A stretch of DNA of 64,000 nucleotides from sequence record PQ287642.1; one strand, given 5' to 3'. The notes beneath the pieces are model-generated. The model was not told the DNA's origin, did not search any database, and saw only the letters and a program-made list of their open reading frames with translations. The position numbers and the translations under genes were made by a program. This document shows, in pieces, positions 459 to 35,588 of the stretch (positions are counted from its first letter, which is position 1; every line of letters begins with the position of its first letter).

Positions 459-2225
459 TTACAGAGAGGTCGCAATCCGTTCCCGGATTTTTGCCATCGT
501 GTCGTTCTTGTAGAATTCACCATTCTTAAAGAACAGCTTCAATTCGCCGGATTCTGTCTCCAGAGTCGCCCAAGACATGTCGGCTTCTTGTTCAAGAACG
601 AAGTTACCTTCTTCATCTTTAATTACACGAAGGAAACCTTTTGCAGACTTCTTACTAGATGCAGCTTTTGGATCTTTATACAGCTCTACGAATTCCTCTT
701 CGATCTGAACAGCAGTGGCTTTAACGGCCATACCGAACGTATCGCGAGTGTTGTACTGATAGGTGTAGCTACCAATACCGAGAACGACGTTACTAGAGGC
801 GTAGCCTTTACGTTCCAAGCGAGACATGATCTGCTCGGTACGTTCTACAGTAATCGAATCGCCATAGATCAGGCCAACATATTCGTTCAGGCATTTGAAG
901 CCTTTACCGTTAACAGTACCGCCAAAGGAATCCCACAGGACTTCAATCGCACCACGTACTTCAACTTCCGGGATAGTCTTTTCAGACAGGAAATCGGAGA
1001 GCGACGAAGCAATGTGATTGATCTCGTAGTATTCGCCTGCGATACGTACAACTTCGTAGCCACTGAACTCAATGGACCCCAGTTCACCGATGTGCTTCTC
1101 GAAATCAGCGCGATCTGCAAACTCAGTCGGGTAAGCCATGTAGCCAGTAATAACTTTAACCGGATCACCGGAGTCAGGACGAACAACAACCCTGGCAAGG
1201 CCAAGTTCATTCTTCAGACGACTTTCGATTTCTGCACGGATGCTCGGGAGAACATCAGAGATAACACCCCAGAAGTCGAAGGAATCACAGACCAGCGAGA
1301 TGATGCCTTCCGGAACTTTCTGAAGAATGATCTCCAGAATGTAGTCACGTTCAGCTTCCAGTCGCAGTTTGTCATGCAGTTCCGGAGTGATCACAGTACC
1401 TTCCTCTTTGAGGAAGTTGATCTTCATTTGCAAACGGTACAGGATGTTGGTAGTGGCTACAGCGTGTTCGGTTGCAGTAACCGAAGCACCCAACAGTTCA
1501 GTATCGCTATTAGCACCGTAATACATCTCAGCGTAATCAAGTGCCGGGATGGTATCAGTACCAGCGAAGCTAGTCAGGTGAGCCGAGCCAGAACGCATTG
1601 CATCTTCAGGGCCACTCATACCACGGAAGCTGAAATCATGTGCTTGGAACTTAACGTGCTCACGGTTATCGCAAGTACGGTCAGCATAATGGTTCAATAC
1701 ACGTTGGTATTCAGCAGCGATGGTTGCGTTGCAAATCATTTTCCAGTTGTACGAACTAACGATGGTTTCCAGATAGTTCACCAGCCAGTAATGATCATCG
1801 TCATCCAGACTGTTGTAAACTACGAAAGTTGGAACACCAATGTTAACACGTTCACCTTCATCAATAGCCAGTACAGTCAGAGGCAGGTAACCCAGTTCAT
1901 GTAGTTTGTACAGACACTCGTGTTTGATAACGCCTTTACCGCACATGTTGTCGAAACGACGTGCAGCGCGTTTAACAGCGATTTCACGAGGCAGATTGAA
2001 GAAGGTACGATCCCACAGTTCTACCAGTTCGTGCCAAGTACCTTGCAACCCGAAGTTAACGACTTTGTTATCGTAGAACGCAGAGCAAGACTTCGACCGC
2101 AGGAACTGCTTAGCAGAGCGCGGGGTGAAGTTAGCATATTTACGTTCAGTACCTTTCGGGTACAGAGCACCATGACCGGGTTTGTAGCAGTCAGTAGCAG
2201 TTGCAGCATAGAGAGCATTAGACAT
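459..2225 (-). CDS. nadV: NAMPT-like enzyme, probably NARP1 nicotinamide ADPR-transferase (Namat)
   Basis: Motifs TDCYKPGH, HDFSFRG, SFAGTDT, ATEHAV, SLVCDSFD, VVVRPDSGDP, LIYGDSIT, GIGSYTYQ; start moved to ATG 2225 (GAGG RBS). Confidence 0.9.
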   Translation of the reverse strand: MSNALYAATATDCYKPGHGALYPKGTERKYANFTPRSAKQFLRSKSCSAFYDNKVVNFGLQGTWHELVELWDRTFFNLPREIAVKRAARRFDNMCGKGVIKHECLYKLHELGYLPLTVLAIDEGERVNIGVPTFVVYNSLDDDDHYWLVNYLETIVSSYNWKMICNATIAAEYQRVLNHYADRTCDNREHVKFQAHDFSFRGMSGPEDAMRSGSAHLTSFAGTDTIPALDYAEMYYGANSDTELLGASVTATEHAVATTNILYRLQMKINFLKEEGTVITPELHDKLRLEAERDYILEIILQKVPEGIISLVCDSFDFWGVISDVLPSIRAEIESRLKNELGLARVVVRPDSGDPVKVITGYMAYPTEFADRADFEKHIGELGSIEFSGYEVVRIAGEYYEINHIASSLSDFLSEKTIPEVEVRGAIEVLWDSFGGTVNGKGFKCLNEYVGLIYGDSITVERTEQIMSRLERKGYASSNVVLGIGSYTYQYNTRDTFGMAVKATAVQIEEEFVELYKDPKAASSKKSAKGFLRVIKDEEGNFVLEQEADMSWATLETESGELKLFFKNGEFYKNDTMAKIRERIATSL

Positions 2226-2241
2226 ATTTTTGATCCTCGGA

Positions 2242-3129
2242 TTAGAAAACAGAATGGGAGAAGAATTTCGGGTCACGTACACCATCATGCCGATAATCAT
2301 TTACGGCGTTAGGATGATAGGTGTTAGTGGTCTGGATATAGTCGTAGTATTCGTTCAGCTCGTCGAAACCCTTGGAGAAAATACCATGGGTTACAAACAG
2401 ACCCAGTTGATCTACGATGCACTGTTCGTGGATAACCTTAGCAAGTTCAATGAACGTGCGGCCACCATCACAGATGTCATCGATAACCAACAGCTTTGCT
2501 AACCGAGGAACATCATGGGCATTCAACAAAGAAGTATGGGTGATCTTACCAGTCGACAGTTCACGGTTCTTGCAAGCGTAGAGTACACCAGCAGCGCCAA
2601 TCTCTTTTGCAATGGCTTCGATCTTTTTACGTGCACCTTCATCAGAGGCAACCAACCACCATTCTTGTGGAGTTTCCAGAAGTTGTCCTTCTACACATAC
2701 CCAGCTCTTGATAATATCAGCTTGGGTGATTTCGCGACAGTTGTTGATGAGCGGTAGCGACACATTGCTGTGCGGATCGTACAAACACACGGATGTAGCA
2801 TCCAATGCGTTGATCAAGCTAGTCATCACACTGATCGACAAAGGTTCACCTTCATCGCAAACACGATCTTGTCGTGCATACGGCAGATAACCAATAACCA
2901 GGTGCATTTCAGGACGAATACGTTGACGACGAATAGCATCGAACACCAGGAACAGTTCCATGATGTCATCGCTATTACGAAGCCAAGCATTGACTATGAA
3001 TTGTTCACCTTTCTTTCTGTGATCTTTCAGAGGGATCTTGATACCGATCTCACCGCCAGGGAATTTAAAGGGCTGACAATCGTAGTGATCTGCCAGGCCG
3101 TTACCGTGAAGCTGAGTAATTCGAATCAT
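2242..3129 (-). CDS. prs: Ribose-phosphate pyrophosphokinase-like protein, probably NARP1 ADPR-PP synthetase (Adps)
   Basis: FKFPGGE, YLPYARQDR, DPHS, VASDEGA, LVIDDICDGGRTF, THGIFSKG motifs; directly upstream of the NAMPT-like gene. Confidence 0.9.
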   Translation of the reverse strand: MIRITQLHGNGLADHYDCQPFKFPGGEIGIKIPLKDHRKKGEQFIVNAWLRNSDDIMELFLVFDAIRRQRIRPEMHLVIGYLPYARQDRVCDEGEPLSISVMTSLINALDATSVCLYDPHSNVSLPLINNCREITQADIIKSWVCVEGQLLETPQEWWLVASDEGARKKIEAIAKEIGAAGVLYACKNRELSTGKITHTSLLNAHDVPRLAKLLVIDDICDGGRTFIELAKVIHEQCIVDQLGLFVTHGIFSKGFDELNEYYDYIQTTNTYHPNAVNDYRHDGVRDPKFFSHSVF

Positions 3130-3153
3130 TTATTTTTCCTTTAGGAAAGTTAT

Positions 3154-3169
3154 GGGGACCGAAGTCCCC
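3154..3169 (-). terminator. Hairpin terminator between rtcB and prs
   Basis: GGGGAC-TTCG-GTCCCC on minus strand; weak U-tract, so readthrough is possible. Confidence 0.6.
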
Positions 3170-3176
3170 GTTCGGG

Positions 3177-4430
3177 TTAGCCCTTGACGCAAACAATCTG
3201 ACGCAGGGTGTGGACGATCTCAATGAGGTCATCCTGAGCAGCCATTACGTCTTCAATGTTCTTATAAGCCTTTGGAGTCTCGTCGATCACGTCAATGTCT
3301 TTCCGGCATTCTACACCGGCAGTATCACGAGCGTGGTCAGCAAGAGTGAAAGTCTTAGCGGCTTGGGTTCGGGACATGACACGTCCTGCTCCGTGCGAAC
3401 ACGAACAGAAGGACTCGCGGTTCCCTTTACCTTTCACGATGAAGCTCTTCGCGCCCATCGATCCAGGAATAACGCCCAGCATACCCTCATCTGCACGCAC
3501 TGCGCCTTTACGAGTTACGGATACTTTCGCACCGAAGTGGTTCTCGAAGGAGACGTAGTTATGGTGACATTGCACAGCTGATAAGCTGGTATTGATTGGT
3601 CGACCCATGTAATCTGCAACTGCCTCGATAGTGGCGCGCATCATGATCGTACGGTTGAGCGTGGCATAACGCTGAGCCCAATGTACAGCTTCGATGTAGT
3701 CGCTGTAGTACTTGGTACCTTCCGGTAGATAAGCGAGGTCCTGATCAGGCAGGTTGATGTGGTAGAGCCGCATCTCCTCTTTTGCTTTCTCAATGAAGTA
3801 CCGACCGATTGCGTTACCGATCCCACGCGAACCCGAATGGAGCATGATCCAAACTCGATCTTGTTCATCCAGACAGATCTCTACGAAGTGGTTACCAGTG
3901 CCGAGGGTACCAGCATGGTTGAATGCACGGTTAGCAGCCTTACCCAGTTTCGGGTGTTTAGCCACGATGAGCTTCAGTTCCTCTTCAAGCTTCTTAACCT
4001 GAGCTTGGAGCTCCGGTTCGAGTTTCTTGTAAACGAGGTTGAAGTCACTCCATGTACCACGGTCATTCGGGCCACCATTGTCAGTACGACCATGGGGGAT
4101 ACGGGATTCTATTTTATAACGAAGATGTTGCAGACCATGAGTCATGTCGTTAGCTGTCAGATCAGTAAGCTGGCATGCAATCCCGCACCCAATATCGACC
4201 CCTACCGCAGACGGAATGATTGCACCCCGCGTAGCGATTACGGAACCGATGGTTGCACCGGTACCAAGGTGGACATCAGGCATTACAGCCAAATGCTTGT
4301 AAATGAACGGGAGTCCCGCGATGTTCTTCAGCTGACGTTTTGCATCAGCTTCAACAGGGACGCCTTTAACCCAAGCTTTAATTGGGAATTCATTTTGTTC
4401 GTTCAGCATAACGTATTTTTGAGTAGTCAT
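3177..4430 (-). CDS. rtcB: RtcB RNA 3'-phosphate/5'-OH ligase
   Basis: MPDVHLG, GVDIGCG, GTLGTGNHFVE, LHSGSRG, CHHNY, RKGA, IPGSMG, SCSHGAGR, DETPKAYK motifs. Confidence 0.97.
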   Translation of the reverse strand: MTTQKYVMLNEQNEFPIKAWVKGVPVEADAKRQLKNIAGLPFIYKHLAVMPDVHLGTGATIGSVIATRGAIIPSAVGVDIGCGIACQLTDLTANDMTHGLQHLRYKIESRIPHGRTDNGGPNDRGTWSDFNLVYKKLEPELQAQVKKLEEELKLIVAKHPKLGKAANRAFNHAGTLGTGNHFVEICLDEQDRVWIMLHSGSRGIGNAIGRYFIEKAKEEMRLYHINLPDQDLAYLPEGTKYYSDYIEAVHWAQRYATLNRTIMMRATIEAVADYMGRPINTSLSAVQCHHNYVSFENHFGAKVSVTRKGAVRADEGMLGVIPGSMGAKSFIVKGKGNRESFCSCSHGAGRVMSRTQAAKTFTLADHARDTAGVECRKDIDVIDETPKAYKNIEDVMAAQDDLIEIVHTLRQIVCVKG

Positions 4431-4459
4431 TGTAGACGCTCCGAGAGTTTTAAGGTTTA

Positions 4460-4538
4460 GGAATTCAACGATTTAACGTTGTGCCAAGGTCGGGATCGCA
4501 GAATTCCAAGGATAGGTAGAGTAATGTCATGCCTATCC
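4460..4538 (-). promoter_or_regulatory. Structured intergenic leader upstream of rtcB
   Basis: Inverted repeats GGAATT/AATTCC enclosing CAACG/CGTTG, plus GGATAGG/CCTATCC, in a 140-nt gap. Confidence 0.35.
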
Positions 4539-4569
4539 GTATTAGATAAGACTTTTGAGTAAATTGTCA

Positions 4570-5151
4570 TCAGTCCGATTCAACGGCCATGGATAACTCT
4601 TTATGTTTCCTTCGTCTTTCAATATCAGCAAACCATGGTCTTACACTTAACCATATTGCAGGCCAACTGAGAATAGCCGCTACAGCCATCCACACTGCAC
4701 TGAGTAGCACCCATGCGTCGTTACCATCGTCAACATCTCGTGGAGCTATGTCGAGTTGATAGTCAGTTCCAACGGGGACATGGTGATAAGTGTAATCACC
4801 TAGCTTAGTTTCGTATACGAAGGGGACACCTTTCATCTTCCCTTCCCAACGACCCATTAGCTCTGTGTAGATCCCATGTTTGTATTTGTGGGTCTCTTCC
4901 CATTTCCAGGTCAATACAACCTGGGTCTTACGTTTGGTTACGTAGTCAGAGAAGAATGAGTTGTAGACTGCACCACCCATAAATGCTAAGCAGATTAGGT
5001 AGAGCACCACACAACGCAGTTTAACCCACTTGGAGATTGGTACATACGGCTCTTGTTTCATAGTCATCGTACAGCCGATTGCGTTTGCATAACCCAAGGG
5101 ATTCCTTGATGCCATTGCATTTATTGCGGCTGCCTCCAGAGTTATACTCAT
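4570..5151 (-). CDS. Hypothetical membrane protein with two predicted TM helices
   Basis: Hydrophobic stretches CVVLYLICLAFMGGAVY and AWVLLSAVWMAVAAILSWPAIWL. Confidence 0.75.
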   Translation of the reverse strand: MSITLEAAAINAMASRNPLGYANAIGCTMTMKQEPYVPISKWVKLRCVVLYLICLAFMGGAVYNSFFSDYVTKRKTQVVLTWKWEETHKYKHGIYTELMGRWEGKMKGVPFVYETKLGDYTYHHVPVGTDYQLDIAPRDVDDGNDAWVLLSAVWMAVAAILSWPAIWLSVRPWFADIERRRKHKELSMAVESD

Positions 5152-7031: not shown

Positions 7032-8462
7032 TCAGACAGCTACTTTCCCAGCGATGTGTGGATGGAACTGGTAATCCAGAATCTCGTAATCTTCCCGAGT
7101 GATATCAAGGAAAGGTTTACCTTTGGCCTCAGGCTTGAAGCGGATGGTAGGAGTAGGATAAGTATTCCGCGAACGTTGCAGAGTAACCTGTTCCTCATGG
7201 TTACTGTAGATGTGACAGTCACCACCAGTCCAGATGAACTCTTCTGCTACCATGTTAAACTGGTTCGCCAATTGATGAGTCATCAGCGAATAGAACATGA
7301 TGTTAAAGGGCACGCCCAAAAATTCGTCCGCCGATCTTTGATAGAGTTGACAACTGATAGCTCGTTTCGGAGCACCATGTTGATCCAACCATTCTACCAC
7401 TGCTTCATCGGTAGCCTTTTCATAACCACGATAGATACGCAGAAGTGCTTTAACCTGCTCAGCACCACCGAATGGAGGTTGACCACGAGTAGTCTCACCA
7501 CTAATCTGATCATGGTAAGCATCAGCTTCGAAATGCGTTTGGTCTAGAGCTTGCACTCGTTCATCTACGGTAAGTTCACGGGTCCAGAACTGAATAAATG
7601 CATGGCATGGCGGGAGTGCCTGATCTTCGACCAAACGTGGATCCCAAGCACAGATAATCAGTCGACGACTATCTGGATTGTTTTCCAGTTGGTAAAGCAG
7701 TTCTTGAACCTGATCCACACGCCGGCGAATAACACACTCATCTTTCGTGTAATCAACACCAGGTACGTCAACTACGAACTTAAAGCCGCGTTTCTCGTAA
7801 TTAGCCCAGTCTACTTTAGGAACGATACGAACATCGTCGATATCACGCCAGGTTTTACCATAGACCGGACCAAGATCACCACCAACCAAACGGAAGGCAG
7901 CCAACAGACCATCGTTGTCTTTAATCACGATCTTCGCATCGCCAATGACAATACGATATACGCGTAGAGCCATGCCATAGTAGTCGAATGCATCGGGACC
8001 AGGACCGAAACGACTTACATCAGCCCAGGCTTTCAGGTTGATCAACAGTAGTGCCGATTTGTCCTGTTCAGGATCAATCCACTTCCAATCGACATCACCG
8101 ATCTCATTGCTGAAATGCATCTCAAACGGAATGTTCTTGAACTTCTTCTGAACAGCTGTAGTCAGCCAATCATCAGAAACCTTTTCGAATACTTCAGTAC
8201 CCGGCTTAACCCACTCGTTCCAGATGGTGACGTTCTTGCTCAGGAGATACTCAAGGCGAGTGTCACCAGACTTCATCCAGTTGAGTTCTTCTTCAACCGA
8301 CGGAAGATGAATCTTCTTGGTGGTCACTACAGGGAGGTTACCGTTACGAAGATCATAGCGGAACTGTCTACCGAACAAAGAGGTAGTACCCGTACCAGTA
8401 CGGTCACCTTTAAATACACCGTACTTCTGGGTATCTTCAAGTAGTTGTAGATACTGATGCAT
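7032..8462 (-). CDS. thyA: Thymidylate synthase with large insertions
   Basis: DRTGTGT, TTKK, LGPVYG, PDSRRL, LPPCH, YQRSAD-x-FLGVPFN, GDCHIY. Confidence 0.95.
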   Translation of the reverse strand: MHQYLQLLEDTQKYGVFKGDRTGTGTTSLFGRQFRYDLRNGNLPVVTTKKIHLPSVEEELNWMKSGDTRLEYLLSKNVTIWNEWVKPGTEVFEKVSDDWLTTAVQKKFKNIPFEMHFSNEIGDVDWKWIDPEQDKSALLLINLKAWADVSRFGPGPDAFDYYGMALRVYRIVIGDAKIVIKDNDGLLAAFRLVGGDLGPVYGKTWRDIDDVRIVPKVDWANYEKRGFKFVVDVPGVDYTKDECVIRRRVDQVQELLYQLENNPDSRRLIICAWDPRLVEDQALPPCHAFIQFWTRELTVDERVQALDQTHFEADAYHDQISGETTRGQPPFGGAEQVKALLRIYRGYEKATDEAVVEWLDQHGAPKRAISCQLYQRSADEFLGVPFNIMFYSLMTHQLANQFNMVAEEFIWTGGDCHIYSNHEEQVTLQRSRNTYPTPTIRFKPEAKGKPFLDITREDYEILDYQFHPHIAGKVAV

Positions 8463-28261: not shown

Positions 28262-28305
28262 ATTAGGCAATCCTATAGTTCTTCCTTAACAGCAAAGGTG
28301 CTAAT

Positions 28306-29256
28306 ATGTTTGAAGTGCTGTTATCATTGAGTCAAAAGAAGCAAGCTATAGAGTATCCATTTTCTGGACCAGGAAGTAAATTCCTAATAAAGGGTAATGA
28401 GACACTTGGGTATTTCGGTCTAGTCGATTCGAAAGATATTTATTTTCGTGAACGGTTTATCGAACAGGCAGATATAGCCGACTATACCAACTCTATTGTA
28501 GGTTCATTCGCTAATCAACAATGGGTTAAATATTTCTGGATGGGTAAGGTTTGTTTTGCACCTTTATCTATCTACATGACCAACGTCTCATGGAAGGTTC
28601 TTTACGACAAAGGCCTTGTATTTGGAGACAACACGATTGGTCAAAATATTCCAAGTGGATATAATACCGTTCAAGATAAGTTCTATCATTTTACTGACGA
28701 TGAAGGGAGCTGGCAGTTTAGAATCCGTATGGGTCATCTAACTGAGAACCCATTCACTCCAACTAATAATGAAGACCCAACAAGTGAACTTGGTCAGGTA
28801 TTTACACGAGTGACTAATGGGTCTTGGGACAATAGACCCACAAGTGTTATCGGTCTTGGTAACGGTACATGGACAAAGGCATTGAATACAGCCCAGCGCC
28901 CAATGTATCAGTTTTACAACACAAGTATCACGTCTGTAAATAATAATGCCCCAACGAATAATGGTATTTGGCGTCCGGTATTAGAGCTGATTCCTAAAGA
29001 TGAATATCACCTAGTACCAATAGAAACGACTATTAATGCTTACAGTAATTTAGCCGAAGCTAGTATTATAACTAATACAGAAATCAGCTCTGGTGGAATT
29101 CAACCTATTATTCAGCTTACTTCACTACCAACTCCTGTAAGTATTGCTTATATTAGCAATGCCCCACAAGATGAAACGCTTATCGACTTGAACAGTATAT
29201 CGCGAAAGATAGATAAAACAGCTGAAGTTAGAATTAATAGCTTTAGTTTCACATGA
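28306..29256 (+). CDS. Virion/tail paralog 1 (phiKZ tail-tip-like family)
   Basis: GPG..LIKG....GYFG.V, WVKY.W.GK, VSW..LY..GLV, WRPVLELI. Confidence 0.75.
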   Translation: MFEVLLSLSQKKQAIEYPFSGPGSKFLIKGNETLGYFGLVDSKDIYFRERFIEQADIADYTNSIVGSFANQQWVKYFWMGKVCFAPLSIYMTNVSWKVLYDKGLVFGDNTIGQNIPSGYNTVQDKFYHFTDDEGSWQFRIRMGHLTENPFTPTNNEDPTSELGQVFTRVTNGSWDNRPTSVIGLGNGTWTKALNTAQRPMYQFYNTSITSVNNNAPTNNGIWRPVLELIPKDEYHLVPIETTINAYSNLAEASIITNTEISSGGIQPIIQLTSLPTPVSIAYISNAPQDETLIDLNSISRKIDKTAEVRINSFSFT

Positions 29257-29268
29257 GGATGATTTAAC

Positions 29269-30255
29269 ATGGCATTTACAATCAATCTACGTTGGGTAAA
29301 CCCAAACGACGCGTCCGTAAGTATTAAAATTTATCGATCGGCAACAATGATTGATAGAAACAACCCTGGTACACCAATTGCAGAAGTCAATGGTGACGTT
29401 GATGGTTATGCTGACGAAGGGCTTACATATGGACTTATTTACTACTACATGTTTGAATCATCGAAAGATGGGGATGTAGCTAAATCTCGTGTATTCCAGT
29501 TCCATGCGGTACCTTTCACTGGACCTGGTCCACAGCGCTTAGTTGCAGGTAACATCAATTATGGTTACTACGGTTCTCTTCCCACTGTTGAATTTATTTC
29601 GGACAGTGAACTAATCGCTCGTTGTGGTTTGTCCTGGAACGCAGCTAATAATGCTGGTCAACGTTGGCATAAATTCGCATGGAAAGGACGGACTTTCTAT
29701 GTACCTGAATATTCCATCGCAACTGGTTCCCTGTACTGGATGGACCTCTATAATGCGGGTCTAGTATACAGTAAGAACGCAGTACCATCCGCTGTCCCCG
29801 GTGTTACTACTCCTGTTCCTCAGGGCAAGCGAATCAATTTTGCTCTATCTGAATTTGAAGTATCTTTGCCTTCCGTTCTAGTTGATCACGATGATCCTAA
29901 TTCTGTTAGTGATCTATCGTCATCCGCAGTGACTGCATTAGGTAATTCTGACCCATCTCTCAGTAATGGTACCGTCGAGTTATTTTTAGCCGGTATGACT
30001 AGTCAGTTCTATGCTAATAAAACATTGGAACGAGTTAACGTAACCGGTGATAATGAGGCTACACGTGTTAATAGTAAAGCTATTCTAACACGAGATACTC
30101 CAACCACTCAAGCTTCTGCATATATTTCGCGAAATACGAGTGCAACGAAAGCTTCGGCTTTTGTACCTCAACATACAAGTAGAACCTCAAGTTCAAACAT
30201 TTGGTTCCCTGTACTGGAACTTATCCCTGGTAACTTCGTTGACTTTGAGGTGTAA
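29269..30255 (+). CDS. Virion/tail paralog 2 with N-terminal FN3-like domain
   Basis: LRWVNPN..IYRS..Y.D..YYY then the shared GPGP..GYYG..WHKF..W.PVLEL domain. Confidence 0.75.
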   Translation: MAFTINLRWVNPNDASVSIKIYRSATMIDRNNPGTPIAEVNGDVDGYADEGLTYGLIYYYMFESSKDGDVAKSRVFQFHAVPFTGPGPQRLVAGNINYGYYGSLPTVEFISDSELIARCGLSWNAANNAGQRWHKFAWKGRTFYVPEYSIATGSLYWMDLYNAGLVYSKNAVPSAVPGVTTPVPQGKRINFALSEFEVSLPSVLVDHDDPNSVSDLSSSAVTALGNSDPSLSNGTVELFLAGMTSQFYANKTLERVNVTGDNEATRVNSKAILTRDTPTTQASAYISRNTSATKASAFVPQHTSRTSSSNIWFPVLELIPGNFVDFEV

Positions 30256-30257
30256 TC

Positions 30258-31208
30258 ATGGGTATTAAAGTACAATGGGGTTTGACCAATGATCGAGAAG
30301 CAGTCACATTTGATATTTTTCGATCTGAAACAAAATTCGATGAATCGACATTACCTAGTGTATTAGTTAATGTGCAAGGAAACATCAAAGAGTACGATGA
30401 TACAACAGCTATTAGAAATAAAGTCTACTATTACTGCATCGGTTCTAATTTTGAGAATGGTGATGTAACCTATTCCAAAGTGGTTGCACTTGCTAACATG
30501 CCTTACACTGGTTTCGGACCAAATACCCTTCGTTCTGGAGACTATGAATTAGGTTATTTTGGTGAGGTTCCAGATTTTGTATTACCTGGTGAAATAACAG
30601 ATCTTTGTGGACTCAGTCTTTTGACTGATATTAGAATTCCACCTGTAACGGATTTCATTTGGCATAAGTTCGTTGTAGATGGGCGCATTTTCATGCTACC
30701 AATTCGCTACGTGGCTTATAACCTACGTTGGGCTGATGTCTATAATGCGGGTTGTGCTTGGTCAACACCTGGAGACCATTGGGATGATCTTCCTGCTCCT
30801 GTTAAGACTGTAGTTGGTACGCCAACCGAACAAGGTAAGACTGTCATTATTAAGAATCATAGTTACAGAGTTGGCCTGCCTACATTTGCTGGTGAACGAT
30901 CACTCGCAAGTATAGCTGCTGGACAGGCTGTCTATGATCAGTTTAATGATCTACTTGGCCTCACATGGGATCGTCTAATTGCATATGCATCGAACATCAA
31001 TAAGCCTAACCTTAAAACACGCGTTAACTCGACTTCAACGAACGTTGTAATGACGGGTGGCGCACCTGGTTCGGGTATCTTCATGACGCGTACATTCGTA
31101 GGTGAAACCCAGTCTATATTGGTCAGAGGTGCAGCGCTTATGAACGTTTCCAGTACTCTGGTAAATAGCGCGGCTGCATTCATGCCAATTCTAGAACTAG
31201 AGCTATAG
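30258..31208 (+). CDS. Virion/tail paralog 3 with N-terminal FN3-like domain
   Basis: Same architecture; ends FMPILELEL. Confidence 0.75.
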   Translation: MGIKVQWGLTNDREAVTFDIFRSETKFDESTLPSVLVNVQGNIKEYDDTTAIRNKVYYYCIGSNFENGDVTYSKVVALANMPYTGFGPNTLRSGDYELGYFGEVPDFVLPGEITDLCGLSLLTDIRIPPVTDFIWHKFVVDGRIFMLPIRYVAYNLRWADVYNAGCAWSTPGDHWDDLPAPVKTVVGTPTEQGKTVIIKNHSYRVGLPTFAGERSLASIAAGQAVYDQFNDLLGLTWDRLIAYASNINKPNLKTRVNSTSTNVVMTGGAPGSGIFMTRTFVGETQSILVRGAALMNVSSTLVNSAAAFMPILELEL

Positions 31209-31216
31209 GTGATTCG

Positions 31217-32170
31217 ATGATTAAAGTAGGCTTTTCGGTTACAGGTGATATTGTTGACTTAAAAGCTTATCGTTCTACAGAACCATTTGATGTGAATAAT
31301 CTTCCAGCTGTTTTTAAGCAGCTGGATGTTACTGATCGAGAATTTGTAGACGATACCGCTTTGAAAGATACACCTTATTTCTATCTTGTTATTGGTACGG
31401 ACAATACAGGTTCTTTCGTATTGAGTGATGTAAAAGCTATTTGCATTATTGATTACACTAATAAAGGACCTGGTCCCGAAACTCCCGTATTCGGTGACTG
31501 GTGGATTGGTTACTTCGGAACATGTCCAATCGAAGATGTTTTTGAGGTGGCTGATTTTAAAACAAATTTGGCTTTACCATCTAACTTCAAGAATACTGTT
31601 GATCAACCAACAGAAGCATGGAAAATACAGTTCAAAGGTGTAACGTATTACATCCCGAACAGAGTTCCATATTCTGGAATGTCATTCATGGATGTTTATA
31701 GGGCAGGTGTTCTCCTTGATACGGTAGAAGACGGTGTTGGTACTTTACCATCATCTCTCACTAATCCAGCTGTAATGCAGGGTAAGATCTATTCTAGGAA
31801 TGGTAATAGTTTTGCTGTTGGGTGTATCCCACATGGTGATAAGGTAGTATACACCAATGCTACTGATGCGATGGTAAGTCTCCATGTGATGAATGATCTA
31901 GCTTTAGATACCTTCGAACGTCTATTCAATACAGCAGTAAACCCAACTGGACAGTTGTATTCTGGTTATCAACGCAGTCGTTACGGTAATCAGTTACCAT
32001 CGTCTATAGCTCCAGGTAATGGCTTGAATATTTTCTATAAAGCTGTTACTGAAGATAACCGTTGTATCCAACGTGGATTTAGCACATCTATCGCTCACCA
32101 GCTTGACAATGCTTTTACAGCTTCCGGTGCTGGGCGCGGATTCAATCCAGCATTACGTTTGATTCGATGA
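31217..32170 (+). CDS. Virion/tail paralog 4 with N-terminal FN3-like domain
   Basis: Same architecture; ends FNPALRLIR. Confidence 0.75.
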   Translation: MIKVGFSVTGDIVDLKAYRSTEPFDVNNLPAVFKQLDVTDREFVDDTALKDTPYFYLVIGTDNTGSFVLSDVKAICIIDYTNKGPGPETPVFGDWWIGYFGTCPIEDVFEVADFKTNLALPSNFKNTVDQPTEAWKIQFKGVTYYIPNRVPYSGMSFMDVYRAGVLLDTVEDGVGTLPSSLTNPAVMQGKIYSRNGNSFAVGCIPHGDKVVYTNATDAMVSLHVMNDLALDTFERLFNTAVNPTGQLYSGYQRSRYGNQLPSSIAPGNGLNIFYKAVTEDNRCIQRGFSTSIAHQLDNAFTASGAGRGFNPALRLIR

Positions 32171-32181
32171 GACAACATAAA

Positions 32182-32200
32182 GCCCGGCATTGAGCCGGGC
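32182..32200. terminator. Terminator after the paralog cluster
   Basis: GCCCGGC-ATTGA-GCCGGGC flanked by ACATAAA and ATATGT. Confidence 0.75.
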
Positions 32201-32231
32201 GATATGTCTGTTTAGATTAGAGAGTCCAAAC

Positions 32232-32357
32232 ATAGTCGTCAAGGCACCGTAGTTAGATACTCGTCTTTGCTCCCGCAAATACTTTAACGTATCAAGTTAA
32301 AGAATCGGCTGGATCACCCCCTTAAAGTGCAGCGCTATGCGCGACTGCCTTGACTAT
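32232..32357 (-). ncRNA. Candidate multi-branch structured ncRNA
   Basis: 9-bp closing stem GTCAAGGCA/TGCCTTGAC enclosing several hairpins, including a GNRA-capped stem on the minus strand; no ORF. Confidence 0.5.
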
Positions 32358-32438
32358 ATCATTACTGTTTTAGTAATCTTTTTCTAAATCTTACACGTAG
32401 GCCAATTCTATGAATTTACCCCTTAAGGATAAACCCAC

Positions 32439-35400
32439 ATGTTAGACTCATTCCGTTCGATATTTGGCGGCTTGACAGTCAAAGAAACTGAAACGGAGAT
32501 TATCATCTCTGGTATTCGTGGATTCGACATAGTCCGAGATATCAGTAAGCATTGGAAGACTTCCAAGATTACAACCAACTTGTTCAACAACATTGGTCGG
32601 AACTCATTAAGCTTCTATAAGTTCTTTGCTCCTGAAGTAATGTACATGTTGGAAAACATTGTCTATTACCGTTCTCGATATACCTCTGTAAAAATGATCG
32701 CTGCTATTAAAGATGCGCTTTTACAGAATACTTGGCTTGCCTCTACTAAAGCCATTGATGAGAAATCAGTACAAGGGCGACTTAATCTAGCTAATCTGTC
32801 TCGATTAAAATTTGATCCAAAACCGTATCAATTAGAGTATTTCAAGAACTACACATATCGGCTAGATCAATACAATCTAAATGGTGACTTAATTGCCGCG
32901 GCCGCCGGTACGGGTAAATCTCTTCGTTTGGACGCCGACATCAAGATACCAGGTGGCTGGATTAAAATGGGTGATGTTAAAGTAGGCGATATTGTCACCG
33001 CTTGGGATGGTACCCCTACACGTGTGACCGGCGTGTACCCACAAGGTAAGCGTCAAACTTTCACGATCAAGTTCAAAGATGGGCGGGAAGTAGATGCATG
33101 CGATGAACATCTTTGGCGCGTCTATAAATACGACTGGACACGATATGGAGGAGATGGTTGGAAAATAATCAATACCAAAGAACTCTTTGCTTACATGCAA
33201 ATGCCGAGTTTTAAGAATCGTTTGTATATCCAGCTTTGCAAATCCGAAGATACTCCAGCCCTAGATCTTCCTATTGATCCATATAACCTCGGTGTTATCT
33301 TAGGCGATGGATGCCTATCTAAAGGTATCGATATTACTAAGGGTGATCAAGAAATATTTGATCTGGTAAAACTTCCGGATAACCTTAAGTTTGTTACTCG
33401 CGATCATAAGACGCGTGGTATCGTTGCTAAAGACGGGGAGAAAAACACCTATCTCGATATTTTTCGTGAACTCGGATTAATGGGTAAGACAGCCCTTGAT
33501 AAGTTTATTCCTGACCAGTATCTCCATGGATCGACGGAACAACGTTTGGCAATCATCCAGGGCTTAATGGACACCGATGGTACCGTAGATGAGAATAGTA
33601 ACGTTAGCTTCTGTAGTAGTAGTTACCGTTTGGCTACTCAATTCCAATACCTGATTAGATCGTTAGGCGGCATTGCTAAGATTCAGGTTAGAGAGCCGCA
33701 TTACACTTATCTTGGTGAACGTCGTGAAGGTAACGCGGCATATCGGGTTAACGTTCGTTTCCCTGAACCCAGCACGTTGTTTAGATTAACTCGCAAACGC
33801 GAACGATGTAATGATAACGGTCAGTATGCCGGTGAAACACTCAAGCTTAAGATCACACACGTAAATCTTTCCGAAAGGATTGAGACGCAATGCATTAGCG
33901 TTGAGCACCCTGATCATTTGTTTATTACGAACGATTTCATAGTGACACATAACACATATCTTACTTCAGCTATTGCCGAGATGCTTGATGCTGAACTCAT
34001 TGTTGTAATGTGCCCTAAGAATGCTTTGGATCTAGTCTGGTTAGATTCCCTGAAAGAGATGTTCCATAAGCCGCAAACAGTTTGGCATACGTTCGAACCT
34101 AATATGCCCTACAAAGGACAGCGTTGGATCGTCTGTCATTACGATGCAATGGATAAGGTAGTAGAACTTCTTAGAAACCGTAATATAGTTGGTAGCAAAC
34201 GTACTGTGACGATTCTAGATGAATCGCACAACATGAATGACCCTAACTCTACGCGGACTAAACTTTATCAACTCATTGTAAAGATGGTCGGTTCTCGTAA
34301 TAATCTTTTAGCTTCGGGCACGCCTGTAAAAGCATTGGGTGTTGAACTGATTAACTTACTGCGAATAGTAGATCCTCTATTCACTCCGCAGGTAGAAGAA
34401 CGCTTCAAGAAGATGTATGGTAAAGAAGCGTCTAAAGGACTCGATATAATCAGACATCGATTAGGTCTTGTATCCTACAAGGTAGAGAAACAAGAACTCG
34501 ACCTAGAGCCCCCGATCATGCGTCCTTATCCAATTAAAATTCCGAATGGTGATGACTTCACCCTCCCGGCTATTAGAAAGGTTATGGAAGCATTTATTCA
34601 AGAACGCTGGGCTTACTACAAAAAGCGGAGACCTGAAGATGATAAACGCTGGGCAGAGTTCTGTGGACTCCATCGAAAAACCCTCAAAACAGCCGCACAG
34701 GAAAGAGCCTTCAAAGAGTACTTGGATCTGGTCAAGTATGTTCAACAGATCCCTGATCCACGCTTTGCAGGAGAGGAAATTAAAGCAACGAACCAATACG
34801 AGAAATTAGTATTTGGACCTTCCCTTCCAAAGCAATTCATCCATGAGTTCAGAGACATCAAATCGGTTATTAAATATACTAACCTTAAGATTCAAGGTGA
34901 ATGTCTTGGACGTGTGTTAGGTGGTAAACGTATTGAATGCCACGTGGCAATGGTCCCGTATGTCGACTGGGTTGGTATTACAGAATCTACTCACAAGAAG
35001 ACGATTATGTTTACTAGCTTTGTTGAAGCAGTGGAAGCAGCAGATGCACATTGTGTTAAGCTAGGTATGAAACCACTAGCCGTTTATGGGAAGACTACTA
35101 ATGAACTGGCTGAAATCGTTAAACGCTTTGATTCGGGTAAGGATCTAAATCCACTCAATGCTACATATGCTTCTCTATCGACAGCTGTTCGCCTGACAAT
35201 GGCAGATACCTTGATTCTATTGAATAGCCCATTCAGAGCTTATATTCTGGAACAGGCTATATCTCGTGCTTATCGTTTAGGTCAAGATTCTCAAGTTGTT
35301 GTTTACCAGTGTTCTCTCGATACTGGGGATATCCCAAATATCTCTACCCGATCGGCTGATATTCTTAAATGGAGTCAGGATCAAGTAGAAGCGATTATGG

Positions 35401-35588
35401 GTATCAAGTCTCCATTTGAGATTGGAGAGGCAATGGAAGACTATGGTGATGAAACACAGTTTGATGAGAACAAAGTAATCCATAGTGTTCTTCAGAAAGC
35501 ATTCGAAAAATTCGACATCGAGATTCCGACAGTTGATTTCGAGATACCCCTTAAACCCAAATCTAATGTTCCCGCATATTTGCGGTGA
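32439..35588 (+). CDS. SF2 (SNF2/DEAD-like) helicase interrupted by an intein
   Basis: Walker A AAAGTGK|T, LDESH, ASGTP, late motifs (TAVRLT, QAISRAYRLGQ). Confidence 0.9.
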   Translation: MLDSFRSIFGGLTVKETETEIIISGIRGFDIVRDISKHWKTSKITTNLFNNIGRNSLSFYKFFAPEVMYMLENIVYYRSRYTSVKMIAAIKDALLQNTWLASTKAIDEKSVQGRLNLANLSRLKFDPKPYQLEYFKNYTYRLDQYNLNGDLIAAAAGTGKSLRLDADIKIPGGWIKMGDVKVGDIVTAWDGTPTRVTGVYPQGKRQTFTIKFKDGREVDACDEHLWRVYKYDWTRYGGDGWKIINTKELFAYMQMPSFKNRLYIQLCKSEDTPALDLPIDPYNLGVILGDGCLSKGIDITKGDQEIFDLVKLPDNLKFVTRDHKTRGIVAKDGEKNTYLDIFRELGLMGKTALDKFIPDQYLHGSTEQRLAIIQGLMDTDGTVDENSNVSFCSSSYRLATQFQYLIRSLGGIAKIQVREPHYTYLGERREGNAAYRVNVRFPEPSTLFRLTRKRERCNDNGQYAGETLKLKITHVNLSERIETQCISVEHPDHLFITNDFIVTHNTYLTSAIAEMLDAELIVVMCPKNALDLVWLDSLKEMFHKPQTVWHTFEPNMPYKGQRWIVCHYDAMDKVVELLRNRNIVGSKRTVTILDESHNMNDPNSTRTKLYQLIVKMVGSRNNLLASGTPVKALGVELINLLRIVDPLFTPQVEERFKKMYGKEASKGLDIIRHRLGLVSYKVEKQELDLEPPIMRPYPIKIPNGDDFTLPAIRKVMEAFIQERWAYYKKRRPEDDKRWAEFCGLHRKTLKTAAQERAFKEYLDLVKYVQQIPDPRFAGEEIKATNQYEKLVFGPSLPKQFIHEFRDIKSVIKYTNLKIQGECLGRVLGGKRIECHVAMVPYVDWVGITESTHKKTIMFTSFVEAVEAADAHCVKLGMKPLAVYGKTTNELAEIVKRFDSGKDLNPLNATYASLSTAVRLTMADTLILLNSPFRAYILEQAISRAYRLGQDSQVVVYQCSLDTGDIPNISTRSADILKWSQDQVEAIMGIKSPFEIGEAMEDYGDETQFDENKVIHSVLQKAFEKFDIEIPTVDFEIPLKPKSNVPAYLR
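32919..33953 (+). mobile_element. 345-aa intein with LAGLIDADG homing endonuclease
   Basis: Starts SLRLDADI, block B ACDEHLW, LGVILGDG and QGLMDTDG motifs, ends IVTHN followed by Thr+1. Confidence 0.92.

Follow-up and report, generated by a model that had tools for sequence, protein, structure and literature searches.

The giant Pseudomonas phage HHBS36_1, a phiKZ-like jumbo phage, carries a conserved, predicted structured small RNA gene whose central junction, devoid of conserved pairing, holds an almost perfect complement of the 3' end of the host 16S rRNA, suggesting that the phage may use an RNA to grip the site where ribosomes recognize messenger RNAs. The stretch of DNA analysed (hereafter the window; 64,000 nucleotides, record PQ287642.1) is 100% identical to HHBS36_1, and the predicted gene occupies positions 32174-32354 on the minus strand. 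To the best of our knowledge, this RNA has not been described before: literature searches for the locus, or for any phage RNA complementary to 16S rRNA, found nothing.

The structured element described in the original prediction is real, and its sequence features were confirmed. The 9-bp closing stem is exact (GTCAAGGCA at 32238-32246 pairs with TGCCTTGAC at 32346-32354), the promoter-like motif AAAGATTAC lies on the minus strand at 32381-32373, the palindrome lies at 32182-32200, and UUUGC-GGGA-GCAAA and GCGC-AUA-GCGC are both present. The gap folds better than shuffled sequences on both strands (z -3.7 and -3.5), its core is conserved as non-coding DNA in distant jumbo phages, and covariation supports the fold. 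Some details, however, needed correction. The gap had been called ORF-free, but a 41-aa ORF with a TTG start (32153-32278, minus strand) is annotated in the GenBank record, although no reading frame is conserved among homologues, which rules out a small-ORF reading. Two of the five helices proposed are not conserved: CUUUAAC/GUUAAAG occurs only in the PA1C and phiPA3 lineages and excludes the covarying helix GAUAC/GUAUC, whose 5' strand lies in its loop, while the CAC/GUG arm does not covary and lies inside the conserved segment complementary to 16S rRNA. The predicted transcript is about 177-181 nt (a 117-nt core, a further hairpin and the terminator), not about 125 nt.

The interpretation given in the original prediction was borne out only in part. 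That this is a discrete phage non-coding RNA gene on the minus strand, with its own promoter-like motif and terminator and belonging to no known family, is supported. In contrast, nothing points to a tRNA-like shape, as ARAGORN found no tRNA or tmRNA genes in the window, and no Rfam ribozyme or other family reached even a permissive threshold. A search of the whole window against Rfam 15 gave no hit at gathering thresholds, and a search of 32100-32500 with E up to 10 returned only two terminator-driven chance hits, at 16.5 and 14.5 bits against thresholds of 70 and 90. The complementarity to 16S rRNA had been overlooked, and it changes the likely function from a decoy, sponge or ribozyme to an RNA that pairs with the anti-Shine-Dalgarno tail of the ribosome.

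We found 16 distinct homologues. The core of the gap is conserved as unannotated DNA in PA1C-like phages, HPP-Temi, phiPA3, phiKZ, SL2 and 201phi2-1, and it was also found in Viktualia, D6 and Psa21 and in seven metagenomic or IMG/VR contigs. The family is so far confined to Pseudomonas phiKZ-like jumbo phages. A covariance model built from eight sequences recovered the D6-like group at E 1e-8 to 1e-11 and Psa21 at 5.5e-9, and found a single copy, with no paralogues, in the window. One genome hit and two metagenome hits to the DNA pattern, which might have been cellular homologues, lie in a carboxyltransferase-like coding sequence or other coding DNA and are rejected by the model. The regions around the helicase gene in Erwinia Simmy50, Klebsiella FBKp24, Vibrio BONAISHI and Vibrio 2 TSL-2019 hold no copy, and a search of IMG/VR for an E. 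coli-type box (CCAACC) with the same architecture gave 0 hits. Aeromonas phage AP1 has a 27-nt match to the 16S end, but this is a captured sense fragment of an rRNA operon next to tRNA-Ile and tRNA-Ala, not an antisense RNA.

In phiKZ the element is predicted to start near 212854 and end near 213030 on the plus strand of NC_004629.1, upstream of PHIKZ204, and in 201phi2-1 it lies at 229020-229201 on the plus strand of NC_010821.1. The homologues sit in four different gene contexts, in support of an autonomous gene: a divergent gap next to the helicase in phiKZ, SL2, D6 and Psa21; between two plus-strand genes in the window; inverted relative to the helicase in phiPA3; and 1.5 kb from the helicase in 201phi2-1. 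This bears on the possibility that the element is a cis-acting 5' leader or attenuator of the minus-strand operon that follows it, with a conditional terminator, the short RNA being a by-product and the 16S-complementary segment a ribosome standby or sensing site. Indeed, in phiKZ, SL2, HPP-Temi, D6, Viktualia and Psa21 the element heads a co-directional gene cluster, 17 leader-derived short RNAs made by premature termination are reported for phiKZ (PMC10914365), and UUAUG, present directly after every terminator (T..ATG invariant), could act as a late TATG start. However, linkage to the same downstream gene is not constant: the downstream gene differs in phiPA3 (the helicase) and in 201phi2-1 (gp305), and in the window the next 4 kb downstream on the minus strand contains no co-directional gene and is antisense to four plus-strand structural genes; even so, the element is 98.9-100% identical among six closely related phages with that arrangement. 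In addition, the terminator has 7 G-C pairs, and no known riboswitch matches. A leader function therefore appears unlikely, although it is not excluded.

The promoter-like motif (32373-32381, minus strand; AA...TAC) matches the published phiKZ middle-promoter motif AAanTTACc, which is centred about -24 from the start site (PMC4666361). AA..TAC lies exactly 14 nt before TATAG in 14 of the 16 upstream regions listed, and TATAG (32354-32358) is present in all 16 homologues. In the window the motif is centred about 23 nt upstream of G32354, the first base of the closing stem, and the RNA should therefore start at the stem, not 20 nt before it; it should be noted that this start site is inferred from the -24 rule. 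At the other end, an intrinsic terminator stem-loop GCCCGGC-UCAAU-GCCGGGC (32182-32200) was called on the minus strand with 7 G-C pairs, followed by UUUAUGUUGU (32172-32181; TTTATGTTGT in the terminator call). Homologues have terminator stems of different sequence, each followed by UUAUG. Bounded by these two motifs, the predicted primary transcript (32174-32354, minus strand) is about 177-181 nt, and homologues measure 159-187 nt.

In the predicted fold, all on the minus strand, stem P1 pairs GUCAAGG (32348-32354) with CCUUGAC (32238-32244); position 2 shows U-A, C-G, G-C and A-U among homologues, and CCUUG is invariant. P1 closes a junction that carries the P2 hairpin (32330-32347; CAG-U-CGC-GCAUA-GCG-CUG), the register of which is ambiguous near the bulge, and the P3-P4 arm (32256-32293), composed of P3 GAUAC/GUAUC, an asymmetric internal loop, P4a GU/AC, and P4b UUUGC/GCAAA capped by the GNRA loop GGGA. 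Between P2 and P3 lies J2/3 (32294-32329), a 36-nt junction with no conserved pairing and involved in no covarying helix. J3/1 (UAACUACGGUG, 32245-32255), in which CUACG is invariant, connects the arm back to P1. Downstream, a P5 hairpin (UGUUUGGA / UCUAAACA, 32209-32232) is predicted; a hairpin of different sequence occupies this position in most lineages, but it is short or doubtful in the D6-like group.

RNAalifold on plain MAFFT alignments recovered only P1 and part of P2, because indels misalign P3 and P4, and these alignments were therefore replaced with a hand-built helix table and a covariance-model alignment. On the latter, four helices are supported: 92.6% of cells pair against 74.5% in shuffles (0 of 500 shuffles reach the observed value), slid controls give 28-42%, and 18 of 26 pairs show double changes, although this alignment was fitted to the model. 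In P2, 5 of 7 pairs show double changes, while in helices 3 and 4 (the P3-P4 arm) 100% and 97% of cells are paired and 11 of 12 pairs show double changes. The manual table agrees.

The helices contain 341 Watson-Crick pairs, 18 G.U pairs and 4 C.A mismatches when read on the minus strand, which fixes it as the RNA strand. The opposite possibility is that the functional RNA is the plus strand, which carries CGGCUGGAUCACCCCCUUAA and could be a mimic of the 16S 3' end, acting as a decoy for a factor that binds or cuts the 16S tail, such as a nuclease, a methyltransferase or a hibernation factor. The plus strand does fold better than shuffles (z -3.5), would be transcribed in the window by read-through from the upstream structural gene, and resembles 16S positions 1493-1514 and 1524-1542. 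However, G.U pairs on the minus strand become C.A mismatches on the plus strand (18 against 4), the promoter motif and terminator tail are on the minus strand, the plus strand is antisense to all neighbouring genes in phiPA3 and 201phi2-1, and the anti-Shine-Dalgarno core would read CCCCC instead of CCUCC in most members. This reading is therefore very unlikely.

The most informative feature is the segment UAAGGGGGUGAUCCAGCCG (32306-32324, minus strand) within J2/3, hereafter the box, whose core is invariant and which is complementary to 16S rRNA positions 1524-1542 (E. coli numbering), including the anti-Shine-Dalgarno sequence. In the window the duplex has 19 contiguous pairs at -38 kcal/mol and is the best site by 14 kcal/mol; the next-best site reaches -23.6, and the mean is -8.7 with sd 3.0. 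All 16 sequences form 17-19 contiguous pairs with the 16S 3' 19-mer, at -34.8 to -38.0 kcal/mol. Internal variation is A/G opposite U1537 and U1541 and C/U opposite G1526, and all of these changes keep pairing, through wobble. [quoted passage not shown] Moreover, single-sequence folding predicts partial pairing of the box, with an opening cost of 5.5-9 kcal/mol, and pairing between the box and the loop or 5' strand of P5 (CU-rich) is seen in some lineages but is lost in HPP-Temi. The box does not appear to be a true translation initiation region, as no AUG, GUG or UUG sits 5-10 nt downstream of the Shine-Dalgarno core and stop-free stretches differ in frame and strand among homologues. A distant parallel was found in Ralstonia phage FLC1-1B, which has, in a 436-nt gap, the 15-mer UAAAGGAGGUGAUCC, the exact complement of the Ralstonia 16S end GGAUCACCUCCUUUA, including the extra U of that host, followed by a helix and a GCGA-capped hairpin; the model hit is, however, weak (E 0.15).

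The box might alternatively be aimed at a phage or host mRNA, for example at anti-Shine-Dalgarno-like stretches such as ACCCCUUAAGGA in the neighbouring helicase leader (32418-32429), with which it shares 8 complementary bases, and most known small RNAs act on mRNAs. We consider this improbable, because the helicase-leader motif is absent in phiPA3 and 201phi2-1, an 8-mer is expected by chance in 64 kb, and an mRNA target would be free to drift together with the RNA, yet the box is fixed across genera that differ everywhere else. A further possibility is that the conserved segment is a protein recognition site, for example for S1, bS21, IF3, Hfq or a phage RNA-binding protein, its complementarity to 16S rRNA being incidental or a relic of origin from an inverted rDNA fragment. 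A small 3-bp hairpin inside the box (GGR/UCC with loop GGUGA) is predicted in every sequence, with G.U changing to A-U at one pair, and it lengthens to 5 bp in the Ralstonia phage. The order of the box and CUACGG-UNCCUUG (J3/1 together with the 3' strand of P1) matches the reverse complement of 16S rRNA, the latter resembling that of positions 1500-1514, which suggests descent from rDNA, and J3/1 is equally invariant but has no obvious target. Against this, 17 consecutive positions are fixed or vary only in ways that keep pairing with 16S, which is more than a 3-bp hairpin would require, the Ralstonia phage box follows the 16S tail of its own host, and no conserved partner gene lies nearby. 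This explanation is possible but doubtful.

The explanation we favour, although we regard it as about as likely as not, is that the RNA docks on the 16S tail of 30S subunits as a Shine-Dalgarno super-mimic. In this view, the phage's own polymerase would transcribe the gene from a middle-class promoter starting at G32354, and the unpaired strand would present the box to the free 3' tail of 16S rRNA (positions 1530-1542, which include the anti-Shine-Dalgarno CCUCC), with pairing that may extend into the 3' strand of helix 45. Such a duplex would be far stronger than the Shine-Dalgarno pairing of any mRNA, and the RNA would therefore occupy or sequester the anti-Shine-Dalgarno site, or tether itself to it, and alter which mRNAs start translation in mid to late infection. 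The gene boundaries (by motif), the conservation, the covariation, the strand and the complementarity with wobble-neutral variation rest directly on the analysis, while it is inferred that the RNA is made, that it binds ribosomes, and whether its effect would be inhibition, protection or tethering. Some observations call for caution. Grad-seq of phiKZ infection at 10 min reported only two other non-coding RNAs (PMC8545117). Positions 1524-1529 of 16S are paired in helix 45 of mature subunits, and only about 13 of the 19 pairs are therefore immediately available. In addition, phiKZ mRNAs have ordinary leaders and none is reported to be leaderless (PMC8244752), so that a general block of the anti-Shine-Dalgarno site would also hurt the phage, and a temporal switch towards leaderless late mRNAs is not supported. 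A more speculative and rather unlikely extension is that the RNA is a two-part clamp for the 3' minor domain of 16S rRNA, in which the box pairs with positions 1524-1542, the invariant CUACGG-UNCCUUG, released when P1 opens, pairs with positions 1500-1514, and the P3-P4 arm takes the place of the apex of helix 45. The RNA would then unzip helix 45, or prevent it from forming on nascent 16S, and would remodel, mark or inactivate a subset of 30S subunits or block maturation of new host ribosomes; if so, it would be the first viral RNA known to restructure rRNA.

Phages are known to seize the ribosome with proteins, but no natural regulatory RNA, viral or cellular, is known to act by pairing with the anti-Shine-Dalgarno tail of 16S rRNA. 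If this family does so, it adds a new layer to host takeover by nucleus-forming jumbo phages, in which translation is physically separated from transcription, and would give a natural tool for tuning or blocking Shine-Dalgarno-dependent initiation. It also makes directly testable the old question of what happens in vivo when the 16S tail is occupied, as phiKZ and PAO1 offer a tractable laboratory system and the phage carries a single, small, mutable gene. Even if the rRNA reading fails, this is a new structured RNA family, absent from Rfam and conserved across at least five jumbo-phage genera.

Among known systems, the short RNAs of phiKZ and 201phi2-1 found by ONT-cappable-seq and Grad-seq (PMC10914365, PMC11512511, PMC8545117) come from the same group of phages, belong to the same size class, are bounded by a phage promoter and an intrinsic terminator, and are conserved among jumbo phages. 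The RNAs named in the main texts lie at other loci (upstream of gp182/gp277, gp221, gp302 and p40, and downstream of gp298) and none is said to complement rRNA, although the present locus may be an unnamed row in the supplementary tables. Extended Shine-Dalgarno sequences in mRNAs, such as the 165-nt Bradyrhizobium small mRNA with a 17-nt Shine-Dalgarno sequence found in the ribosome fraction (PMC5711450) and the extended motifs in S. aureus (PMC13009471), likewise present a long run of complementarity to the 16S 3' tail on a short RNA able to hold 30S subunits. However, those are translation start sites followed by a start codon and an ORF, whereas here neither a start codon at initiation distance nor a conserved ORF was found, and the complementarity runs on into helix 45 sequence. 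A precedent for longer, functional RNA duplexes at the 16S 3' end is a cellular interaction with mRNAs, which uses the precursor tail beyond the mature end. Phage-encoded ribosomal protein bS21 (PMC7797042) and phiKZ gp014 (PMC10914614) are also phage factors aimed at the host ribosome, and bS21 sits at the 16S 3' tail and controls access to the anti-Shine-Dalgarno site, but those are proteins, while this would be an RNA acting by base pairing. Finally, synthetic oligonucleotides and PNAs complementary to the 16S 3' end, reported in the 1970s-1990s to block initiation, have the same target sequence and the same expected effect, namely occupation of the anti-Shine-Dalgarno site; those are artificial, and the RNA proposed here would be a natural, virus-encoded, structured version.

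Window 31200-33500 is 100% identical to Pseudomonas phage HHBS36_1, a 302-kb phiKZ-like jumbo phage, and 96-99% identical to PS119XW, PA1C, phiLBG22 and BRkr. The element lies in the 268-bp gap 32171-32438, between the last (31217-32170) of four tandem genes of similar size and the gp203-like SNF2/DarB-like helicase (32439-35588), both flanking genes being on the plus strand. The four tandem genes (window 28300-32170, annotated as 1107-4971 of our locus L001) are about 950-990 bp each and are all on the plus strand; one is annotated as a virion structural protein in HHBS36_1, and all four in PA1C. They separate the RNA gene from the minus-strand cluster that directly follows it in phiKZ, HPP-Temi, D6 and Psa21, while in HPP-Temi and phiHQ the block is missing or fragmented. 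It looks like a lineage-specific insertion or expansion.

The observation on which this study was based is confirmed, as every sequence feature listed in the original prediction was found in its place. The 9-bp closing stem is exact, AAAGATTAC is present at 32381-32373 on the minus strand, and the palindrome is present at 32182-32200. The gap folds better than dinucleotide shuffles on both strands (z -3.7 and -3.5). ARAGORN found no tRNA, and a search of the whole window against Rfam 15 gave no hit at gathering thresholds, while a permissive scan returned only two chance hits driven by the terminator. The GenBank record annotates a 41-aa hypothetical protein (HHBS361_CDS0179; 32153-32278, minus strand) across the 3' half of the RNA and its terminator, and Viktualia and HPP-Temi have similar small calls. 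However, no reading frame is conserved among the homologues, and these are probably mis-annotations of the RNA gene.

The core of the gap is conserved as unannotated DNA well beyond the close relatives: in phiPA3 (81% identity), in phiKZ-like phages (about 70%), in 201phi2-1 (72%), in Viktualia and D6, and in Psa21. A degenerate DNA pattern then recovered three metagenomic contigs and four IMG/VR contigs of about 310 kb, for a total of 16 distinct sequences. The hosts include P. aeruginosa, P. chlororaphis/atacamensis and P. syringae. In contrast, the gene context changes among lineages. In phiKZ, SL2, HPP-Temi, D6 and Psa21 the element sits in the divergent gap between the helicase and a minus-strand cluster; in the present window the four plus-strand structural genes separate it from that cluster; in phiPA3 it is inverted relative to the helicase; and in 201phi2-1 it lies between gp304 and gp305, 1.5 kb from the helicase. 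An element that keeps its sequence while its neighbours change is a unit of its own. It should be noted that a cis-acting leader with a conditional terminator would fit the ancestral position and the phiKZ precedent (PMC10914365), but it does not fit this window or phiPA3.

The phiKZ middle-promoter motif has been described by Yakunina et al. as AAanTTACc, centred about 24 nt upstream of the start, and the late motif as TATG, with G as +1 (PMC4666361). On the minus strand, AA..TAC lies exactly 14 nt before TATAG in 14 of the 16 upstream regions listed. If the G of TATAG is taken as +1, the motif is centred at -23, and that G is 32354, the first base of the closing stem. No sigma-70-like promoter is present, as expected for a phage that uses its own polymerases. 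About 45 nt upstream of the RNA start, TCATAAGATTAGC is conserved in phiKZ and in D6-like phages (about 2660-2690 in our locus L005, and the upstream regions in loci L014, L021 and L023), whereas this window has the variant AATCTTACAC (32386-32402). Read on the other strand, the conserved sequence contains CTTATG, a candidate late promoter for the divergent helicase gene.

The terminator scan called 32200-32182 on the minus strand, with 7 G-C pairs and the tail TTTATGTTGT, and homologues have stems of different sequence at the same place. The predicted RNA therefore extends from 32354 to about 32176, some 177-181 nt; homologues measure 159-187 nt. UUAUG(U/C) directly follows every terminator stem (32172-32181, minus strand, in this window). 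This may simply be the U-tract, but it may also be a late TATG promoter for whatever lies downstream.

Because plain alignments misplace indels, RNAalifold recovered only P1 and part of P2. Each sequence was therefore segmented by hand into helices, and a covariance model was built from eight sequences and used to align all matches. The model found exactly one copy in the 64-kb window, recovered the D6-like group, which was not in the seed, at E 1e-8 to 1e-11, and Psa21 at 5.5e-9, and rejected the three chance pattern hits. On the resulting alignment, 92.6% of pair cells are standard pairs, against 74.5% in shuffles (0 of 500 reach the observed value), and 18 of 26 pairs have changes on both sides, while sliding the partner by 1-3 columns gives 28-42%, although it must be considered that this alignment was fitted to the structure.

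In the predicted fold, P1 (32348-32354 with 32238-32244) encloses the P2 hairpin (32330-32347), a 36-nt unpaired junction (32294-32329), the P3-P4 arm (32256-32293) and an 11-nt junction, J3/1, UAACUACGGUG (32245-32255). The P3-P4 arm comprises P3 GAUAC/GUAUC, an asymmetric internal loop, P4a, and P4b UUUGC/GCAAA with a GGGA loop; a GNRA loop is present in all lineages except the phiKZ/SL2 group. The P5 hairpin (32209-32232) and the terminator lie outside the core. In most lineages P5 carries a CU-rich stretch (ACUCUCU here, GACCUCU in phiKZ and D6-like phages, CUUCUCCUU in the homologue at locus L020), which looks like an anti-Shine-Dalgarno sequence and could pair with the conserved box of the same molecule described below, but this pairing is lost in HPP-Temi. 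Two of the helices proposed in the original prediction match P2b and P4b. In contrast, the proposed CUUUAAC/GUUAAAG hairpin exists only in the PA1C and phiPA3 lineages, and is incompatible with P3, which covaries (GAUAC/GUAUC, GGUAC/GUACC, GGGGU/ACCCC). In the helices we counted 341 Watson-Crick pairs, 18 G.U pairs and 4 C.A mismatches; on the plus strand the G.U pairs would be mismatches, so the minus strand is the RNA. The same wobble asymmetry, together with the signals on the minus strand, disfavours the alternative that the plus strand acts as a mimic of 16S rRNA.

The junction between P2 and P3 holds the longest invariant run of the family, AGG(G/A)GGUGAUCCAG(C/U)C. In this phage it reads UAAGGGGGUGAUCCAGCCG (32324 to 32306 on the minus strand), which is the reverse complement of the last 19 nt of 16S rRNA, CGGCUGGAUCACCUCCUUA, with one G opposite U1537. 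The rRNA sequence was checked in two ways: the E. coli rrsH end read from the genome is GAAGUCGUAACAAGGUAACCGUAGGGGAACCUGCGGUUGGAUCACCUCCUUA, and the variant with G1508 and C1527, which we attribute to Pseudomonas, including P. aeruginosa, is 100% identical in rRNA operons of Acinetobacter, Halomonas and Legionella. With the E. coli variant only one pair becomes a wobble.

Duplex prediction gave 17-19 contiguous pairs and -34.8 to -38.0 kcal/mol for every one of the 16 sequences, and -20.8 to -22.2 kcal/mol with only the 13 nt that are single-stranded in the mature subunit. Across both strands of the 64-kb window, 30-nt segments score a mean of -8.7 (sd 3.0), and the best site outside this locus scores -23.6. 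The three internal variable positions are A/G opposite U1537, A/G opposite U1541 and C/U opposite G1526, and all keep pairing; however, only about 9 of 17 positions would tolerate a transition, so this is suggestive rather than decisive, at roughly 0.15 by chance. No start codon follows at initiation distance and no ORF is conserved, and the box is therefore not a real ribosome-binding site for a gene. Single-sequence folding predicts some local pairing of the box, with an opening cost of 5.5-9 kcal/mol, but this pairing is not conserved, apart from a possible 3-bp hairpin. An mRNA target is disfavoured by the fixity of the box across genera. The helicase leader (32418-32429, plus strand), which reads ACCCCUUAAGGA, has a CCUUAAGG palindrome overlapping its own Shine-Dalgarno sequence and an 8-nt complement of the 5' part of the box. 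This could be a local target or a coincidence, and it is absent in phiPA3 and 201phi2-1.

A second, weaker resemblance was observed downstream of the arm, where CUACGG-UNCCUUG (J3/1 plus the 3' strand of P1) resembles the reverse complement of 16S positions 1500-1514, in the same order as in rDNA. Local alignment against shuffles gave z 3.4-4.1 in the HHBS36_1, phiKZ and L020 lineages, but only 0.4-2.2 in the others. This may be a trace of origin from an inverted rDNA fragment, or a second pairing site, and is regarded as a lead only. A protein-binding site remains possible as an alternative, and would explain why J3/1 is also invariant.

A distant parallel, possibly a relative or an analogue of this RNA, was found near the helicase of Ralstonia phage FLC1-1B (LC819005.1, about 173100-173270; 7940-8110 of our locus L027), where a 436-nt non-coding gap gave a weak model hit (14 bits, E 0.15). 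The gap contains UAAAGGAGGUGAUCC, followed by a 5-bp helix (AUCUG/CAGAU) enclosing an 8-bp hairpin with a GCGA loop, and then by CUAACUG. The Ralstonia 16S end read from a megaplasmid rRNA operon is GGAUCACCUCCUUUA, and the 15-mer is its exact complement, including the extra U that Pseudomonas lacks. Because this is one lineage (two near-identical phages, the second being FLC4-3B), it is supportive only. No copy was found next to the helicase in Erwinia, Klebsiella or two Vibrio jumbo phages, and a search of IMG/VR for the same architecture with an E. coli-type box found nothing. The T4-like Aeromonas phage AP1 (MT713136.1 233818-234080; 2765-3027 of locus L025) carries the last 27 nt of a 16S gene, followed by tRNA-Ile and tRNA-Ala in the order found in a bacterial rRNA operon spacer, apparently a captured host fragment or an assembly chimera. 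In phiKMV-like phages, a 21-nt stretch inside the scaffolding protein gene (e.g. LUZ19, NC_010326.1 23906-23926) matches the reverse complement of 16S positions 1516-1536 at 20 of 21 bases (E 0.6) in dozens of P. aeruginosa podophages, which is probably chance fixed by descent.

Positions 1530-1542 of 16S rRNA are single-stranded on the 30S platform and pair with Shine-Dalgarno sequences, oligonucleotides complementary to this tail block initiation, and positions 1520-1529 form the 3' strand of helix 45. What our analysis shows is a conserved, autonomous, structured RNA gene on the minus strand, which displays an invariant unpaired complement of the 16S tail. What we infer, from sequence alone, is that the RNA is produced and docks on 30S subunits through a duplex of 13 bp or more, which is far stronger than any mRNA's Shine-Dalgarno pairing and would therefore occupy the anti-Shine-Dalgarno site. 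The consequence could be competitive inhibition of Shine-Dalgarno-dependent initiation, protection of the tail from nucleases or hibernation factors, or tethering of the RNA (and anything bound to its arm) to ribosomes. A blanket block is unlikely, because phiKZ mRNAs have ordinary leaders and none is leaderless (PMC8244752); dosage, timing (a middle promoter) or location relative to the phage nucleus would have to matter. We are highly confident that this is a real structured RNA gene, we consider it only slightly more likely than not that it pairs with 16S rRNA in the cell, and we regard the explanation as a whole as about as likely as not.

The interpretation originally proposed, that of a discrete phage non-coding RNA such as a tRNA-like decoy, protein sponge or ribozyme, is supported in part. 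The transcriptome and Grad-seq papers on phiKZ and 201phi2-1 describe other short RNAs at other loci, although this locus may be listed as an unnamed candidate in their supplementary tables. Among the texts that could be searched, none mentions PHIKZ204 and none describes a phage RNA complementary to 16S rRNA, nor do the transposon and antisense-oligomer screens of phiKZ discuss this locus. While small RNAs are an established theme in phages, this is a new RNA family whose most likely target is the ribosome's own mRNA-recognition tail and, if the pairing is real, it represents a mechanism not described before. The closest known systems are extended Shine-Dalgarno mRNAs (PMC5711450, PMC13009471), synthetic oligomers directed against the anti-Shine-Dalgarno sequence, and phage ribosome-binding proteins.
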